DNA from: Marsupella aquatica
Lineage: Eukaryota; Plantae; Marchantiophyta
Direction of reading: 5' to 3'
Assembly (NCBI GenBank): GCA_973895155.1
Contig: OZ316897.1
Location: 9,137,832-9,201,831, forward strand
DNA length: 64,000 nt
A program made the position numbers and the translations under genes. Below are positions 39,998 through 49,861 of the stretch, piece after piece. Under the pieces are notes generated by a model. It had not been told where the DNA came from. It saw only the letters and a list, made by a program, of their open reading frames with translations, and did not search any database. Numbering within the stretch: position 1 is the first letter of the stretch; the number at the start of each line of letters is the position of its first letter.

Positions 39998-40807
39998 CTA
40001 CATGGTCTTCTTCGCAACATTGTCGAGTGAACTTTTTTCCACAGCAGCATCTGCAGGTTGGCCCCTCTTCTTATTACCATAGAACTTAATCAATCCCACC
40101 CATAATTTGTACACCCAGACTATGCTTCCGAAAATAGCGAAGGATATCTTGAACATCCAGCAATACGCCAACCACCTCGGCACCACCGCGTCAGCCATAC
40201 CTCGCAGATAAAACTTACCCAGCTCCCAAACCAAGTAGGGCCCCAGAATTCCTCTCACCAGAGTGAAATAGAAGGTGAAAAAGGGAGACAGAGAAGTGTA
40301 GACACGTTTGGCAAGGGGAGACTCCTGGCGAGCCATCCGGGCAATGGTCCAGATGTTCTGCACGGGGCTTGTGGCCTCCCCGGCAGCAATGAGACACATC
40401 ACAGAAGTAGCACCAAACCCTGTGTAGTAACGGCACGAGAACATGTACGTGAAGGTGGCAACATGATGCCCAATGAAGAGAAAATCATCAGGAGCAGCAT
40501 ACAAGTAGTTGAGCAGGTCGATCACAAAATAGGCCATGCTGTACTCCATGATCTGGTTTTGCCAAACGGTATTGGGCGCATCCAGAAGCCAAGGGCTGGT
40601 GAAAATGTCCTGCGCTGCCAGAATTGCGGAGACTGTGCCATGCACGAGGGAGATGCAGCAACTCGCCGCATCGAATCGAGGCCTCCCTTTCCATCGCTTG
40701 AACACCACGAAGTAGCCGAACGCATACACCACGGTGTACAAAGCCATTGAGTTCCACAACACCGGCGAACCGCTGTAGCCCATGCCGCTCCAACTCGCCT
40801 CACCCAT
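39998..40807 (-). CDS. TLC (TRAM/LAG1/CLN8) domain membrane protein, 269 aa, intronless CDS
   Basis: Multiple hydrophobic helices; ISLVHG, APNT..Q, YSMAYFVIDL, FIGHH, GEATSPVQNIW, FYFTLVRGILGP motifs of plant TLC proteins. Confidence 0.9.
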   Translation of the reverse strand: MGEASWSGMGYSGSPVLWNSMALYTVVYAFGYFVVFKRWKGRPRFDAASCCISLVHGTVSAILAAQDIFTSPWLLDAPNTVWQNQIMEYSMAYFVIDLLNYLYAAPDDFLFIGHHVATFTYMFSCRYYTGFGATSVMCLIAAGEATSPVQNIWTIARMARQESPLAKRVYTSLSPFFTFYFTLVRGILGPYLVWELGKFYLRGMADAVVPRWLAYCWMFKISFAIFGSIVWVYKLWVGLIKFYGNKKRGQPADAAVEKSSLDNVAKKTM

Positions 40808-43800: not shown

Positions 43801-44628
43801 TGAACACGGGTCATTAAACTCCGTCACCTTCTCCTGACCTTCAGCAGCAAACTCCTGGCATACTAGCGCATGACGTTCGCATTCAATTCCCGCAGAACAA
43901 AGCCACGGAAGCAAAAGATACAATGGCTAATAGAAACGATCACAAGACCTGTCCGCTGTAGAGAACAGACCCATCGGCCATGTCCGTCACTTCCACCTCC
44001 GTAACAAAGGAACAGACAAATCACTCCGTAACGAATCAATAATGAAACCAAGGAATTTTACACATAAAGGAGACGAGAGAGAGACGCAGAGTTCATGAAG
44101 GACTGTAGTGTGAAAGAACAACAGATTTCGTTTATACGCTACGTGTCGTCAATTGCGTCGCTTCTCTCTCTGATTCCCCGTAAACGGCAGCGACTTTGTC
44201 ACTTTTTAACACGGGAGATTCGGACCAGGCTTATCCTCTCGAACTGCTAGGGATCGCTGGCCATACAATTACCATGCTATCAACCAGCTTTGGTGCTTTG
44301 GTCACGCGAACACTGAACGAAAGTCTGTCTCTGACCACCCTACCACCGCTACCCTACCCTGAGATACCAACGCTATGCAGTGAGGTCCCACTTCGTGATG
44401 TCAACGATTACACCACTCTACTGAAGTGGCGTAGAAGTGACAAAAATCGCAACAAAAGCCGTCTCTGTCGGGAAGGAAGGCGTAATGAGGAGCTGGAAGC
44501 AAATACTTAACGATCAGCCATTACGGAGACCGCTGGCGGATACCATTCCTCATATGCAGCGAGGGAGAAGGAAATAAGATAGGACAAGGGCATGATTAAC
44601 AGCTTGAAGATGAGGTCGACGAGGCGTA

Positions 44629-47600
44629 ATGAGCTGCTGGAAGCAAATACTGAATGATCACCTACTACGGAAACGACTGGCGGATACCATTCGTCCTGAT
44701 GTACCTGAATACAGCGAGGGAGAAGAAAAAAAACAGGACAAGAGCTTGATCAACGGCTTGAAGATGGCCCAGGACAGCAGTCATCAGCAACTCTTGAGGC
44801 GGAAGGGTCCCAAACTCCCTCTCGTGGATCACAAGTAAGCAATGTCCCCTCAGCTTTTTCATCAAGTTTCGGTTCCATTCAGAAAGACTAATCCAGGATA
44901 AAAAATGGTTCGTAGGAATTAGCGCAATTCGGAGCACAGTCCTGAGAGACATTCCCCATACCTTGTTTGCATTCGCGTCCTCTTTTGTATCACCTATTGA
45001 CCCGCATTTAGGCTGGACTTCATGCCGTGTCAACAGATTTCGTCCAGATGAGTGATATCTTGTTGATTCATGACAATGATATGTATCCAATTACAATCGA
45101 TGCCAATACTGACGCCACGCATAATTCTGTACATGCTTTAGGATTTACAATTTCTGCGCCTTTGTCGTGCACTAGAATCTCCACCACACCTCTGTGGATT
45201 AGACGAACGTCCATTACAAATCTATGTGTTTATTGCCAATCTCATAAGAGCCTAAGGTTTGCCTAATGATGATGTCCGACCGGCATCTTTTAATCTTCAG
45301 ATTATATTTCATTCAAAAGTCAGTTTTTATAATTCTCCTCATAAGAAAGTTTGGAGGAAGGGACAGGTATTTGTAAGGGATTGAATCCAATCGATTAGTT
45401 TTTCCGAATGCCGAGGAAACCACAGAAGTAGGGCAAGAGGCAGAGAGTACAGTGTATTGCTTGTAGAGAAACGAAAGAGAATCTGCTCATGGACCGTACC
45501 AACTAACAGTAGTGAATAGTACACAGTGAACGTAGTAAAGCAGACCTATTCCTCATACGCTGGGAAGGTCACTACAGATATGGGCAGCTTTGTGATGAGG
45601 CTGTGGAGTTGGTGTAGACTTATAAAGTACTTGCTGCACGTGAAAGAAGTGATGGTCATTTTTTACACTGCCAAGGCTGAAGTGGTTGCCCTACCCATTT
45701 CACTAGGCATTGCGGGAGTTCATGAATCCCATGTTCTGAAGGAAGAGGTCGTATGTGCACTGGGTTGTGTTGACCACTGTCATTGATGTTGTCAGAGGCG
45801 GCCTCAATGTGGAGACACGAGGTGCACCAAAACATTCACTGTATTGGGGAGACCTTTTTCACACTCTTGTCAATGTAAGTACGAGCATATTGGTTGACAT
45901 GGACCTTCTCCTGTGGAGATAGAAGCTCTAATTTTACTGCATACCTTCGAATTGTTGTTCCCAGTGTCCAGAGCTCTGCTAAAACATTTTGTTGTGAACT
46001 GGTATTCAGCGATCATTTCCTGTGCAAATAAATTTCAGCTTGAGGAGAAGTGGCGTGTCTGACATTATGCATGTACAGATGCCAAGCCCCAGATTTATGC
46101 TGGTTCTCTTTCTTACATACACCATTCTATTTGGAGGATTTGCTTTCCCATATTACTATGATGTAAGGTTTCACCCTCCTTGTCATTTTTACTATGCTCG
46201 ATCGGGGAGTATTTCAGAGTTTTTGGTTGAGCGATTTAGGATTTAAAGTTGAGAGATGGGGAAGCTTTACACAATCTTGAAATAGTAAGTCTCGCCCTAT
46301 TTTCCAGGCTTACAAGAGCCTTTGTATACCGGGTGTACTCGCCTACAGCCATGCCCTTTGGTTCAGGTAAGGGTCTGTTCTGCTATTCTACTAAAACTAA
46401 GATCTTATTCATAAGTTCTGAAAAGGTTGGCCGTGTGACAAGCAACTCTCTTGAATTTTAAGCGAGCAGTTTTGTTCTCACTTGGATGTGTTTCAAAACA
46501 TAGCTAGGATGTCTGACCTGTTGTTGGTTAATGGTGTGACCGGTGGAGTCTGGTGCTTATGTGGCTGGTCCTTACAGTGTACAGACATCTATGACTATTG
46601 GTGGGTTCCAGTAAATTCAAACTCACCCTGAGTTCCGCTTGTATGTACTGTACCACAAAACTTATTGGTAATGAATTCATTTCTGACCAACATAAAGCCA
46701 TGCGTTTTGACAGGATATGGTGGTGAGTTGACTCCCGATCCCAACTGTATGATGACAAATGTAATGGTCGTCGTCCAATCACTTGTCAGCCTGTTAGTTG
46801 CCTATTCTCTGTTGGGTGTCTTCTATATCAGGTTTGCCTGTCATATGACCTCCTGAACTGATTTTCAGTGTGCCAAGTTTCGACTTTAATTTAGACATTG
46901 ATTTCATCTTCTGGAGATTGACCAATGCTTGTGCTACATATAGTGTGACCCCCGCAAATTCAATAAAACAAGAAAAACCTCTCATACGCTAAGGTTTTAG
47001 CAGGCAAATATCCATACAACTTTTTATATTGTTGTCCTGTCTGGAGTAGGTTTGCACGTCCAGCTCGCAGAGCACAAACTTTGATCTTCAGCAAACGAAT
47101 GGTCATGAATGAGGTATATTACGCATCTGCAAGTCCAGCATGGGTTTGTGTTCTTCTAGTGTATCTGTAGACCTGAATAATTCTGTGTGAATGGAAAGGA
47201 AGGTGTCCAAATGGAAGTATTGAGCTAAGTTGTTACTTGTCATATTCACTTTTATTGCCTTCGATTGTGTCAAACGTTTGTGGCTGCAGGAAGATGGAGT
47301 GCGTGTTCTGGCTTTTCGGATGGCAAATATTCGGAAGCATCAAATCATTGAGGTAGTCGGACCCCGATGAATCTATTGCTCGTGATAGTTTTATAGGAAA
47401 GTTTACGCTAGGAATTGCTGGAGGATGAGTTTGTGTTGAGCACCGTACCTTTTTTGTTCATAGTCCAAATATTTGTGGAGGGAGAAATTTTAGCAGGTTA
47501 CTTGACAGAGAGATGCTCAGTAATAACAGACGTCATGCCTATCGAAAGGTTTAGGAAACTGAGGGCTTTTCTATTGTGTGTGGATCGTCAATTTTGAAGG

Positions 47601-49861
47601 GGATGTCCAGTAATTAAAATCTTTGAGAACGTGTGGAATGTAAACAGGCCAATGTTCGTCTTCTTATTGGAATGAACAATCATCTCACTGATGAGAATGA
47701 AAGTGTTTTCCATTTTACCCCCCTTCCGGTTTGTATTCTTATAGTGTCTTTCACCTATTTTTGTGTATCATGCTGGCCTACAAGCAAACTTTGTTGATTA
47801 CAACTCATTTCTTAACGGCAAATATTGGCCAGGAGACGGCACTAAATATATCTAATTTATAGAAAGCAGTGATTTTGTGTGAAGAGGCCATAGTTTATCA
47901 GCCGTACACAAATGTGTTCAGATTGCAAGTCTTTGTGCATGTGTGCTCAATACTAACTAGCAGATCTGCTGGCAGATTGTGGGTGGCAGTGAGGTCTTCC
48001 TAGGGTTACCTTACACTGTTAAGCATCCAATAACATCTACGAGTCCTCTTTATGGCTTGACCGTGCAGGTGGGTGGAAGCTAAGTAGGGTGTTAATGCTG
48101 ATTAGTTTACCAAAGACCGACAACTCGAAGGCTTGGAATAATCTGTGTCAGTGGACCAATTGCATAGGTTTTAAGGAGCAGTTTGGTAATTAAACTACTC
48201 GTGAAAATTGCTTTGCCTCTCCTCCTTGATATATCTTTGTTGTAGTCCTCCTTGTCTGAGGCTTCGATTGGGAAACAAAGTAACCTTGATTTAACGTCCA
48301 GGGCATGGAAGCGGCTGATGCAGAGATTTTGGCGCTGCTGGAGGGTGTGGATGCCTCCACTTCGAGCAAGTTGCAAGGTTGAGTTTGTTTCTGCCCGACA
48401 TATCTGCACCACGTTGCCGCACACTTGCTTTCAGTTAAATTATTTGGCATGACAAGTACTGATCTCCTGCTGATTCTTCTGTGATATCCAGCAAGACGGT
48501 CTTATCTTCCGTCAGATATAGTCAGCGATCATCGTTTTGAGTATGTCTATCTCCAGCTTTTCATATTTTGAGTGCTGTGTCATGGTATTGGAAACTTACT
48601 TGACAATGGTAACAATGGCATCAAGTGTACGAAGATGTGATCATTCGGAATTTGCCAGAATGCCGGAAGATGTTTCTCCCACAGTTGAAAGCGTCCAGTT
48701 TCTGTTTCAAGTTATAGTTGACCTTTGACAGCTGCGACTTGTATGTGGCATCATTCGTTAAAGTGGCCTATCCTTGAAACAACTTGCAGAACAGCAGTTG
48801 CCCGGACGAGCTCTGGTCGACGATCTGTGGTGAGCTGCTGAAATGCCTGTAAATAACTCATACTGCACTGTGAAAGGGAGCTTTTAGGACGGAAAATGTC
48901 ATGACCTCGAACTCGAGAGTATTGAAATATACAGGGACCGACTTTTGTGAGAGCAAAGTCTGGCCCTATATTTGGGAGGTCAATAGTGTGGATTTTCCAC
49001 AATGGTGGTAGTCATTGTCATCATAACTTCGTCAATGGTAATTACACCAACGTTTTCCTTGTGTCATACAGGATTTCACAAAGTTTGATTCAGTTGTACC
49101 AGTCACGGTCAATGTGTTCACAAGACCCGGGGCAAGTGTCCCACCTTCTCCTGCTAGTTCTGCCCTACAGTCACCTCGACTGGGAGGCGTGAATATACCT
49201 TTTCTATCAAATTTCGTTGTGGACCCATCCCTGCGATCCCAAAATTCGGACTTCATGGAGAGAGAGAATGCTTCATCAGTTCAGAGCCTTCCTTCAAGCT
49301 CTGTTAGTCCTGCCGACAGTGAAGAACGGGATAAGCTGAGTGGACTAAACATCGACATTCTAACGACAAGCTTCATTTATCCACAGCGACAGCCATTAGT
49401 GAGGAGTATGCCAGATCTTTCGTACACACAAGTTCTCGTCGATGACCACGAAAAACAGAATTCCCCAAGTGAAGACCTGAAAGACAGGGTGTGTGGTGAA
49501 TAACGAAACCTCATTGTGATCCGTTGTTGTGTTGCTCTGGATGGGTATGATTTATTCCCAACGAAACTACTGAGGGTTCTGCTTTTCTGAATGCCTTAAC
49601 AGCAAGGGTCAGTGATCGAGCATCATGTGGCAGGGGCAAGATTTGTGACCTGTGACACAATAGAATTTTAATTTCGTATTGTTTTTTATGCAGGTTTTAA
49701 TTGCAGAAGCAAGGGCTCAGGCATGGAAACAAATGGTCATTGAGTTGGCATCGGGCATTCAACAGACATTACAACAGCCATCATCAGCTGCAAATGCTGA
49801 TTCTGGAAATCTTGTTGCAAGTGCTCGTCAAGCCCTCTCTGTAGCTTTGGCAACCACTTGA
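44629..49861 (+). CDS. Inward-rectifier (Kir/IRK family) potassium channel, ~539 aa; join(44629..44834,45796..45874,46079..46162,46308..46366,46578..46600,46714..46831,47050..47113,47290..47352,47648..47728,47976..48068,48302..48377,48492..48540,48790..48829,49072..49488,49694..49861); alternative start 44764
   Basis: Fourteen GT-AG introns join into a stop-free 1620-nt frame. Kir motifs in order: LVDHKGGLNV, YWGDLFHTLVN (slide helix), TM1, CIPGV..ALWFSVQTSMTIGYG..PNC, TM2, RFARPARRAQTLIFS, DGVRVLAFRMANIRKHQIIEANVR, FLGLP..HPITSTSPLY, EILALLEGVD..LQARRSY..HRF, VDFTKFD. Confidence 0.9.

Follow-up and report, generated by a model that had tools for sequence, protein, structure and literature searches.

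The analysis reported here concerns a single gene of the leafy liverwort Marsupella aquatica, located on the plus strand at positions 44629-49861 of a stretch of 64,000 nucleotides (nt) of contig OZ316897.1 (positions 9,137,832 to 9,201,831 of the forward strand), which as a whole is referred to as the window. With high confidence, we regard this locus as an intact gene, inherited vertically, that encodes a subunit of a eukaryotic inward rectifier K+ (Kir) channel of the IRK family, orthologous to MPTK1_2g08920 of Marchantia polymorpha. Kir channels are tetrameric and K+-selective and are gated at the bundle crossing and the G-loop. The locus had been pointed out in an earlier note, made from the sequence alone, as an animal-type Kir channel gene. 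For the present analysis, the window was searched exon by exon, and full-length Pfam, PDB, structure, complex and tree analyses were performed with orthologues.

Rebuilt from the sequence, the gene comprises 15 exons that sum to 1620 nt, i.e., 539 codons plus the stop codon TGA, separated by introns of 113-961 nt, all of which (14/14) have GT..AG ends. No in-phase stop was found when each exon was checked in its own phase, and the six codons split by introns are all sense codons, reading K, S, G, R, A, and E. The rebuilt model agrees with the earlier note, which had proposed an intact, stop-free gene of 15 exons with exclusively GT-AG introns and a product of about 539 amino acids (aa). Exon 5, a micro-exon of 23 nt (46578-46600), encodes (S)VQTSMTI and the first base of the filter Gly codon, whereas exon 6 finishes this Gly and continues with YGG, so that the TIGYG filter is shared between the two exons exactly as had been described. 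Because of this split, a list of open reading frames (ORFs) cannot show the filter. Exon 1 is open from its ATG and ends in a GT donor; the context of this ATG is kept in Calypogeia, and the exon has tblastn matches to moss and liverwort orthologues. The exons, with transmembrane helices abbreviated as TM, and a degenerate copy of the gene start are as follows.

44629..44834, plus strand: exon 1, 206 nt; start codon and cytosolic N-terminus, up to and including ...KLPLVDH(K)
45796..45874, plus strand: exon 2, 79 nt; GGLNVETRG...DLFHTLVN, N-terminal strand and slide helix; AG and GT sites, phase 2
46079..46162, plus strand: exon 3, 84 nt; TM1
46308..46366, plus strand: exon 4, 59 nt; short turret containing a conserved Cys, followed by the first part of the pore helix
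46578..46600, plus strand: exon 5, micro-exon of 23 nt; an exon of the same length is annotated in Calypogeia and Marchantia
46714..46831, plus strand: exon 6, 118 nt; rest of the filter (TIG|YG), the second of the conserved Cys, and TM2, in which Ala occupies the rectification-controller site
47050..47113, plus strand: exon 7, 64 nt; basic C-linker, (R)FARPARRAQTLIFSK
47290..47352, plus strand: exon 8, 63 nt; beginning of the IRK_C beta-sandwich
47648..47728, plus strand: exon 9, 81 nt; IRK_C
47976..48068, plus strand: exon 10, 93 nt; IRK_C core (IVGGSEVFLGLPYTVKHPITSTSPLYGL)
48302..48377, plus strand: exon 11, 76 nt; IRK_C (LLEGVDASTSSKLQ)
48492..48540, plus strand: exon 12, 49 nt; IRK_C ((A)RRSYLPSDIVSDHRF)
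48790..48829, plus strand: exon 13, 40 nt; IRK_C
49072..49488, plus strand: exon 14, 417 nt; last part of IRK_C (DFTKFDSVVPV) and, after it, a linker rich in Ser and Pro with predicted disorder
49694..49861, plus strand: exon 15, 165 nt plus TGA; conserved C-terminal helical module
44478..44612, plus strand: degenerate duplicate, in tandem, of the initial ~145 nt of exon 1, upstream of the gene, with ATG start and TAA end

The protein collections do not hold the Marsupella gene's own protein, and the best match there is a protein of Calypogeia fissa (P0043). The annotated proteins of C. fissa and M. polymorpha (MPTK1_2g08920, P0041) were mapped back exactly to genomic DNA, which revealed 15 exons in each of the two genes. 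The lengths of exons 2-13 (79, 84, 59, 23, 118, 64, 63, 81, 93, 76, 49, and 40 nt) are identical in Marsupella, Calypogeia and Marchantia, as are the phases of these exons, and the intron sizes are similar. Since exons 2-13 of both relatives match in length and phase, the gene model is far beyond chance. In tblastn searches, the orthologues matched the predicted exons colinearly, exons 7-14 included. Compared over exons 2-13 and 15, the Marsupella gene shows 90.2% aa identity to Calypogeia (25/26 aa in exon 2), with a synonymous divergence (dS) of 0.28 and a ratio of nonsynonymous to synonymous divergence (dN/dS) of 0.19, and 79.1% aa identity to Marchantia (dS 1.55, dN/dS 0.10); the gene is under purifying selection. 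Judging from these values, the genome would be that of a leafy liverwort not far from Calypogeia, itself a leafy liverwort. The streptophyte alga Klebsormidium nitens possesses a 15-exon gene as well, in which 8/14 intron positions are common with the liverworts and the phase-1 intron inside the filter Gly codon (before exon 6) is shared. No locus was on record for the Chara gene. Because the exons match those of Calypogeia and Marchantia and because of these eight introns of Klebsormidium, the gene is considered native and vertically inherited, in line with its description in the earlier note as a native, intron-rich gene of an early-diverging land plant.

The membership in the IRK family is indicated by single exons as well as by full-length orthologues. 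Exon 6 matched the Pfam family IRK (PF01007) with an E-value of 0.0076 and 16.5 bits (gathering score 22.7) over profile positions 102-135 of 141, and exon 10 matched IRK_C (PF17655) with an E-value of 0.0014 and 18.7 bits (gathering score 22.5). The same exon-wise Pfam searches gave no match for exons 1, 2, 3, 7, 8, 9, 11, and 14 and only a chance-level match for exon 15. Searched against all PDB sequences, exon 10 yielded 36 matches, every one of them (36/36) a Kir or KirBac chain with Kir6.2 as the best, and exon 6 yielded none. A phmmer search of exon 6 against 1.84 billion representatives returned 26 IRK-family matches. When ten of these were scanned, IRK_C was present in 10/10 and IRK in 9/10, the latter at 42-69 bits except for P0011 (19.6 bits); P0008, the sequence without an IRK match, starts past the IRK region. 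Several of the scanned relatives additionally showed a weaker Ion_trans_2 match on the same pore segment.

The Calypogeia protein, which is 90% identical and has the same exon structure, carries PF01007 in a precomputed table. Over its residues 8-325 it matched the PDB entries of Kir6.2 (7.8e-41), Kir2.2 (5.6e-39), KirBac3.1 (1.3e-30), and KirBac1.1 (~4e-26). Its AlphaFold model contains a confident Kir core at residues 28-320, beta-sandwich included, for which Foldseek returned Kir6.2, KirBac3.1, and Kir2.2 as top matches at ~1e-24. The filter columns are invariant over 14 green-lineage homologues. A cytoplasmic immunoglobulin (Ig)-like IRK_C domain after TM2 is present, as seen from the exon 10 match, the colinear alignment of exons 7-14 to orthologues with IRK_C scores of 71-102 bits and the model of the orthologue. 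All these observations support the view already taken in the earlier note that the gene encodes a true Kir channel with a cytoplasmic domain and not a KCO3-like protein. A TPK/KCO3-type identity was rejected, as exon 6 matches only IRK, exon 10 matches only IRK_C and the orthologues carry both; no separate TPK-specific comparison was made.

Both cysteines of the extracellular pair flanking the pore loop are present (exons 4 and 6) and align with C110/C142 of Kir6.2 (C122/C154 of Kir2.1). This pair is kept in 13 of 14 green-lineage Kirs, the Chara protein having Ser at both positions, and is missing in 43/45 bacterial-type homologues. The designation "animal-type" is loosely supported: the Cys pair is kept, and the bit scores of the Calypogeia protein are higher against Kir6.2 and Kir2.2 (143 and 137) than against KirBac (110 for KirBac3.1, and 95). 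The linker motif RPARR aligns with HRR of Kir6.2, and exon 7 aligns, via the orthologue, with HRRAETLIFSK. This HRR contains R176/R177, which play a role in the dependence of Kir6.2 on phosphatidylinositol 4,5-bisphosphate (PIP2).

By homology, four subunits would form one K+-selective pore, each of them consisting, in this order, of a slide helix, TM1, a short turret, the pore helix with TIGYG, TM2, the basic C-linker RPARR and the Ig-like IRK_C domain, which would extend the pore into the cytosol. From established Kir biology, gating would be expected at the bundle crossing and the G-loop, and PIP2 would probably be bound by the basic RPARR linker, as in animal Kirs. What the analysis shows directly is the structure and conservation of the gene, purifying selection, the IRK-family membership of the orthologues and spliced contigs in a relative; for this channel, we infer how it is gated, how strongly it rectifies, whether it selects for K+ and what the C-terminal tail does.

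At the TM2 position that controls rectification (D172 in Kir2.1, N160 in Kir6.2), exon 6 encodes Ala (SLLVAYS; column of A143 in the Calypogeia protein). The same residue was found in all embryophyte, zygnematophyte and Chara homologues examined; Klebsormidium has Asn instead, and Mesostigma as well as the chlorophytes have Asp. Due to this Ala, weak rather than strong rectification is predicted, and it is possible that strong rectification was lost stepwise within the streptophytes (Asp to Asn/Ala). In the alignment of the Calypogeia protein, the turret is 11 residues shorter than that of Kir6.2, and N48 and R50, the ATP-site residues of Kir6.2, are not kept. Therefore, the label "ATP-activated" in the annotation of the Chara protein is unsupported.

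The IRK_C domain is followed by a Ser/Pro-rich stretch of ~100 residues, for which the predicted local distance difference test (pLDDT) score is <50 in the model of the Calypogeia protein, and then by two helices (residues 427-462 and 473-487; pLDDT 84-88). Exon 15 accounts for the last 55 residues, a segment conserved all the way from Klebsormidium and Chara to the bryophytes; between Marsupella and Calypogeia, 50/55 of these positions are identical. When residues 420-491 of the Calypogeia protein were folded as four copies, a score of 0.35 was obtained, compared with 0.01 for the best of three controls; in the calibration, which was done with two copies, the 0.35 mark was reached by 21/30 proteins whose solved structure is a pair of one chain and by 0/23 whose solved structure is a single chain. 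The runs agreed in at least 76% of the contacts, with a partner pLDDT of at least 66, and the contacts were parallel and in register (e.g., 447-447, 451-451, and 454-454). The modeling supports a parallel, self-associating bundle as the predicted form of the C-terminal helical module.

The same features could also be read as those of a protein that has the Kir fold but would not show classical inward rectification. Such a protein might act as a near-ohmic K+ leak or background channel or as an endomembrane channel, and might be controlled via the linker and the C-terminal coiled coil instead of polyamine block. We take this reading seriously, although we rather doubt it. It would account for the Ala in place of an acidic or polar residue in TM2, for an acidic residue of the cytoplasmic pore that, in our reading of the sequence, is shifted by one position relative to the site near Kir6.2 E288, for the lack of conservation of N48/R50 and for the streptophyte-specific tail. 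Nevertheless, the core is otherwise canonical, and the weak rectifiers Kir1.1 and Kir6.2 are still Kir channels.

The splice junctions of the Kir gene were compared with spliced contigs of run X1. These contain the joints of exons 1/2, 2/3, 4/5/6, 6/7, 7/8, 9/10, 10/11, 13/14, and 14/15, among them those from 44834 to 45801, from 45873 to 46079 and from 48828 to 49071, and the joint at exon 7 has GT..AG ends. Loose contig ends fit the junctions of exons 3/4, 8/9, and 11/12, with one loose end before 47646 corresponding to the end of exon 8 and another one behind 48377 corresponding to the start of exon 12. The contig between 46363 and 46713 reads TAG+TGTCCAGACAGCTATGACTATT. In this string, exon 4 contributes its final three bases, which are TAG in the relative from which the run derives and CAG in Marsupella, and the micro-exon of the relative comes next. 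By their nature, the contigs can show neither expression level nor strand. Most junctions proposed in the earlier note are hence seen in contigs of a relative, with the exception of that between exons 12 and 13, which lies outside the X1 rows shown and for which the support comes from homology.

Several points speak against the interpretation of the locus as an intact Kir channel gene, the exon 12/13 junction just mentioned being one of them. Among the runs on record as RNA, none contained the exact Marsupella sequence, and in the case of run X1 the status as RNA is a guess and the source organism is a relative of ~90% identity. In the exon-wise searches, no single exon reached the Pfam gathering score; the scores of exons 6 and 10 are just below it because these exons comprise only 31-38 residues. 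The complex prediction was made with the tail of an orthologue and with four copies instead of the two used for calibration. Finally, no functional study of any plant Kir was found in the literature.

A structure that has to be considered in this context is the degenerate copy of the start of exon 1. Positions 44478-44612 and 44622-44766 form direct repeats with a spacing of about 145-155 nt and 83-88% identity, ATG included. An ORF is located there at 44437-44577, and a TAA ends the frame of the upstream copy after 30 codons. The copy could represent an upstream ORF, if transcribed, or a duplicate in the promoter region. In Calypogeia, only one copy of the exon 1 start exists, and since it lies upstream of the annotated ATG, the annotated start of this gene may be too far downstream. 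Together with the missing exact RNA, the degenerate duplicate might suggest that the locus is a decaying relic with an open frame and not a working channel gene. This appears very unlikely, as 15/15 exons are open and bordered by canonical splice sites, dN/dS is 0.19 and 0.10 against two liverworts, the filter residues and both conserved cysteines are intact, and spliced contigs of the relative occur at appreciable depth in run X1, taken as RNA with the reservation stated above.

Named homologues of the Kir gene were found in liverworts (Calypogeia, M. polymorpha, Marchantia paleacea, and Riccia), mosses (Ceratodon and Physcomitrium), streptophyte algae (Spirogloea, Mesotaenium, Closterium, Klebsormidium, Chara, and Mesostigma) and also in chlorophytes. 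Some of them bear Kir annotations, such as "Inward rectifier K+ channel" in Klebsormidium and "ATP-activated inward rectifier K channel" in Chara, and the truncated UniRef name of MPTK1_2g08920 begins with "Inward recti". A maximum likelihood tree, obtained by a quick search only and containing green-lineage and bacterial-type homologues, showed an embryophyte clade with a support of 98 in the Shimodaira-Hasegawa-like approximate likelihood ratio test (SH-aLRT), which holds sister clades of liverworts and mosses (99 each). The streptophyte algae fall outside this clade without resolved order, Mesostigma groups with the chlorophyte clade (86), and the bacterial-type homologues split off at 100.

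Neither a vascular plant nor a hornwort was among the named matches of three large homologue searches. To this extent, the assumption in the earlier note of a channel class retained in an early-diverging lineage is supported. Two transcripts, P0044 (SRR33208242) and P0045 (SRR32617123), fall into the embryophyte clade but outside the liverworts and mosses. Because they could derive from a hornwort or a vascular plant, an absence of the gene from hornworts and tracheophytes is not claimed here. The Logan contig of P0044 also contains a second ORF upstream on the same strand (L002:2-1066, 354 aa), for which there is no Pfam record. In Closterium spp., the annotation joins the Kir protein to a class IV aminotransferase domain (P0011 and P0047, 1012 and 626 aa); these fusions are probably two adjacent genes merged by the gene model.

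The Kir gene is flanked by a single-exon TLC-domain gene (39998-40807, minus strand; Pfam TRAM_LAG1_CLN8, 5.8e-14) and by pieces of a multi-exon gene for a syntaxin-6/10/61 (SYP61-like) protein (51732-53902, minus strand), both of which had been named in the earlier note. Within 10 kb of the Calypogeia or the Marchantia Kir gene, neither neighbor was found, i.e., there is no synteny in this range. The probability that the locus is a contaminant or was recently acquired from an animal or a bacterium, as might be suspected from the fact that the family is missing from angiosperms and that the nearest solved structures are animal Kirs, is negligible, and for practical purposes this is excluded by the 14 spliceosomal introns placed as in other liverworts (8/14 as in Klebsormidium), by the tree with its embryophyte clade of sister liverwort and moss groups, the algae outside and the bacteria separate, and by the plant genes on both flanks, with the stretch also occurring in independent DNA runs of two further organisms.

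Two repeats were additionally noticed in the surroundings of the vertically inherited Kir gene. A unit of 96 nt (1.9 copies, 90% matches) is located at 50041-50218, ~180 nt past the Kir stop codon and thus probably in the 3′ untranslated region or flank. The other repeat, at 55010-55624, consists of 12.6 tandem copies of a 49-nt unit (~70% matches); several of its frames lack stops on either strand, so that ORFs for repetitive peptides result.

The novelty implied by the earlier note did not hold. Orthologues with 15 exons and the micro-exon are already annotated in Marchantia polymorpha and Calypogeia fissa, and further ones exist in Marchantia paleacea, Riccia, Ceratodon, Physcomitrium, Klebsormidium, and Chara. 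The assumption that the gene is probably uncharacterised is borne out, given that the literature yielded no functional study. Likewise, no paper on an IRK-type Kir of bryophytes or streptophytes was found, the "Kir-like" matches concerning TPK/KCO3, and no mention of Mp2g08920 was found. According to a survey of plant K+ transporters, genes for K+ channels of the transmembrane-pore-transmembrane (TM-P-TM) type appear to be missing from both P. patens and Selaginella (Gomez-Porras et al., 2012; PMC3410407). This is contradicted by the current assembly of Physcomitrium patens, which includes a protein with IRK and IRK_C (P0037). The Kir family is therefore already in public annotation and apparently unstudied, the Marsupella gene being a further member, and for this locus the result consists mostly in the correct annotation of a gene that is in public databases for sister species.

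That liverworts, mosses and streptophyte algae all have a Kir gene on which purifying selection acts implies that the land-plant ancestor had an additional K+ channel of a kind familiar from animals, which appears to have been lost in vascular plants. In flowering plants, inward K+ currents are attributed to Shaker-type channels. Going one step further, we tentatively suggest, with doubt slightly prevailing, that a separate, functionally unexplored Kir subfamily persists in the non-vascular land plants. It would be characterized by a pore of the weak-rectifier type and by a conserved, self-associating helical module that ends a long disordered C-terminal tether; tracheophytes would have lost it, and in mosses it would have been retroposed. 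If this were true, it would constitute a third structural class of plant K+ channels that surveys of K+ transport have overlooked. The channel could contribute to the setting of the membrane potential, to K+ uptake or to the physiology of sperm or rhizoids, and since MPTK1_2g08920 belongs to the transformable Marchantia, its role is directly testable.

The closest orthologues of the Marsupella gene, those of Marchantia and Calypogeia, both encode proteins with IRK and IRK_C. Their exon 1 is annotated with 167 and 95 nt, respectively, as opposed to 206 nt here, and their linker exon 14 has 405 and 384 nt as opposed to 417 nt. Set against these two genes, the tandem duplicate of the exon 1 start is a feature of the Marsupella gene. 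The moss orthologues (Ceratodon KC19_7G047600 and an "uncharacterized protein" of Physcomitrium) belong to the same family, possess the same tail and form the sister clade to the liverworts, with ~58-63% identity to the Marsupella exons in tblastn matches. In contrast to the liverwort and Klebsormidium genes with their 14 introns, however, they are intronless single ORFs (Ceratodon purpureus L005:3001-4608; Physcomitrium patens L007:1001-2458), which suggests that a retroposed copy replaced the intron-rich gene in mosses.

With the animal Kirs (Kir6.2/KCNJ11 and Kir2.2/KCNJ12), the plant channel has the whole architecture from slide helix to IRK_C in common, along with the fold, a T-I-G-Y/F-G filter, the extracellular Cys pair and the basic C-linker, at ~30% identity over ~310 residues (E ~1e-40). 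It differs from them by the shorter turret, the Ala at the TM2 site, the lack of the Kir6.2 ATP-site residues and an extra tail of ~190 residues with a conserved terminal helical module, and the gene is intron-rich. KirBac1.1 and KirBac3.1 have the same fold and a likewise short turret (E 1e-30 to 1e-26), but the KirBac-type homologues are only ~300 aa long, have no tail, mostly lack the Cys pair (43/45) and form a separate clade. Arabidopsis KCO3, which has been called "Kir-like," shares with the Marsupella gene the single-pore TM-P-TM topology but is not known to have an IRK_C domain. It arose recently by truncation of a TPK with two pores (PMC3410407). The Marsupella gene, unlike the TPK2-derived KCO3, is a genuine IRK/IRK_C gene and has an ancient origin.

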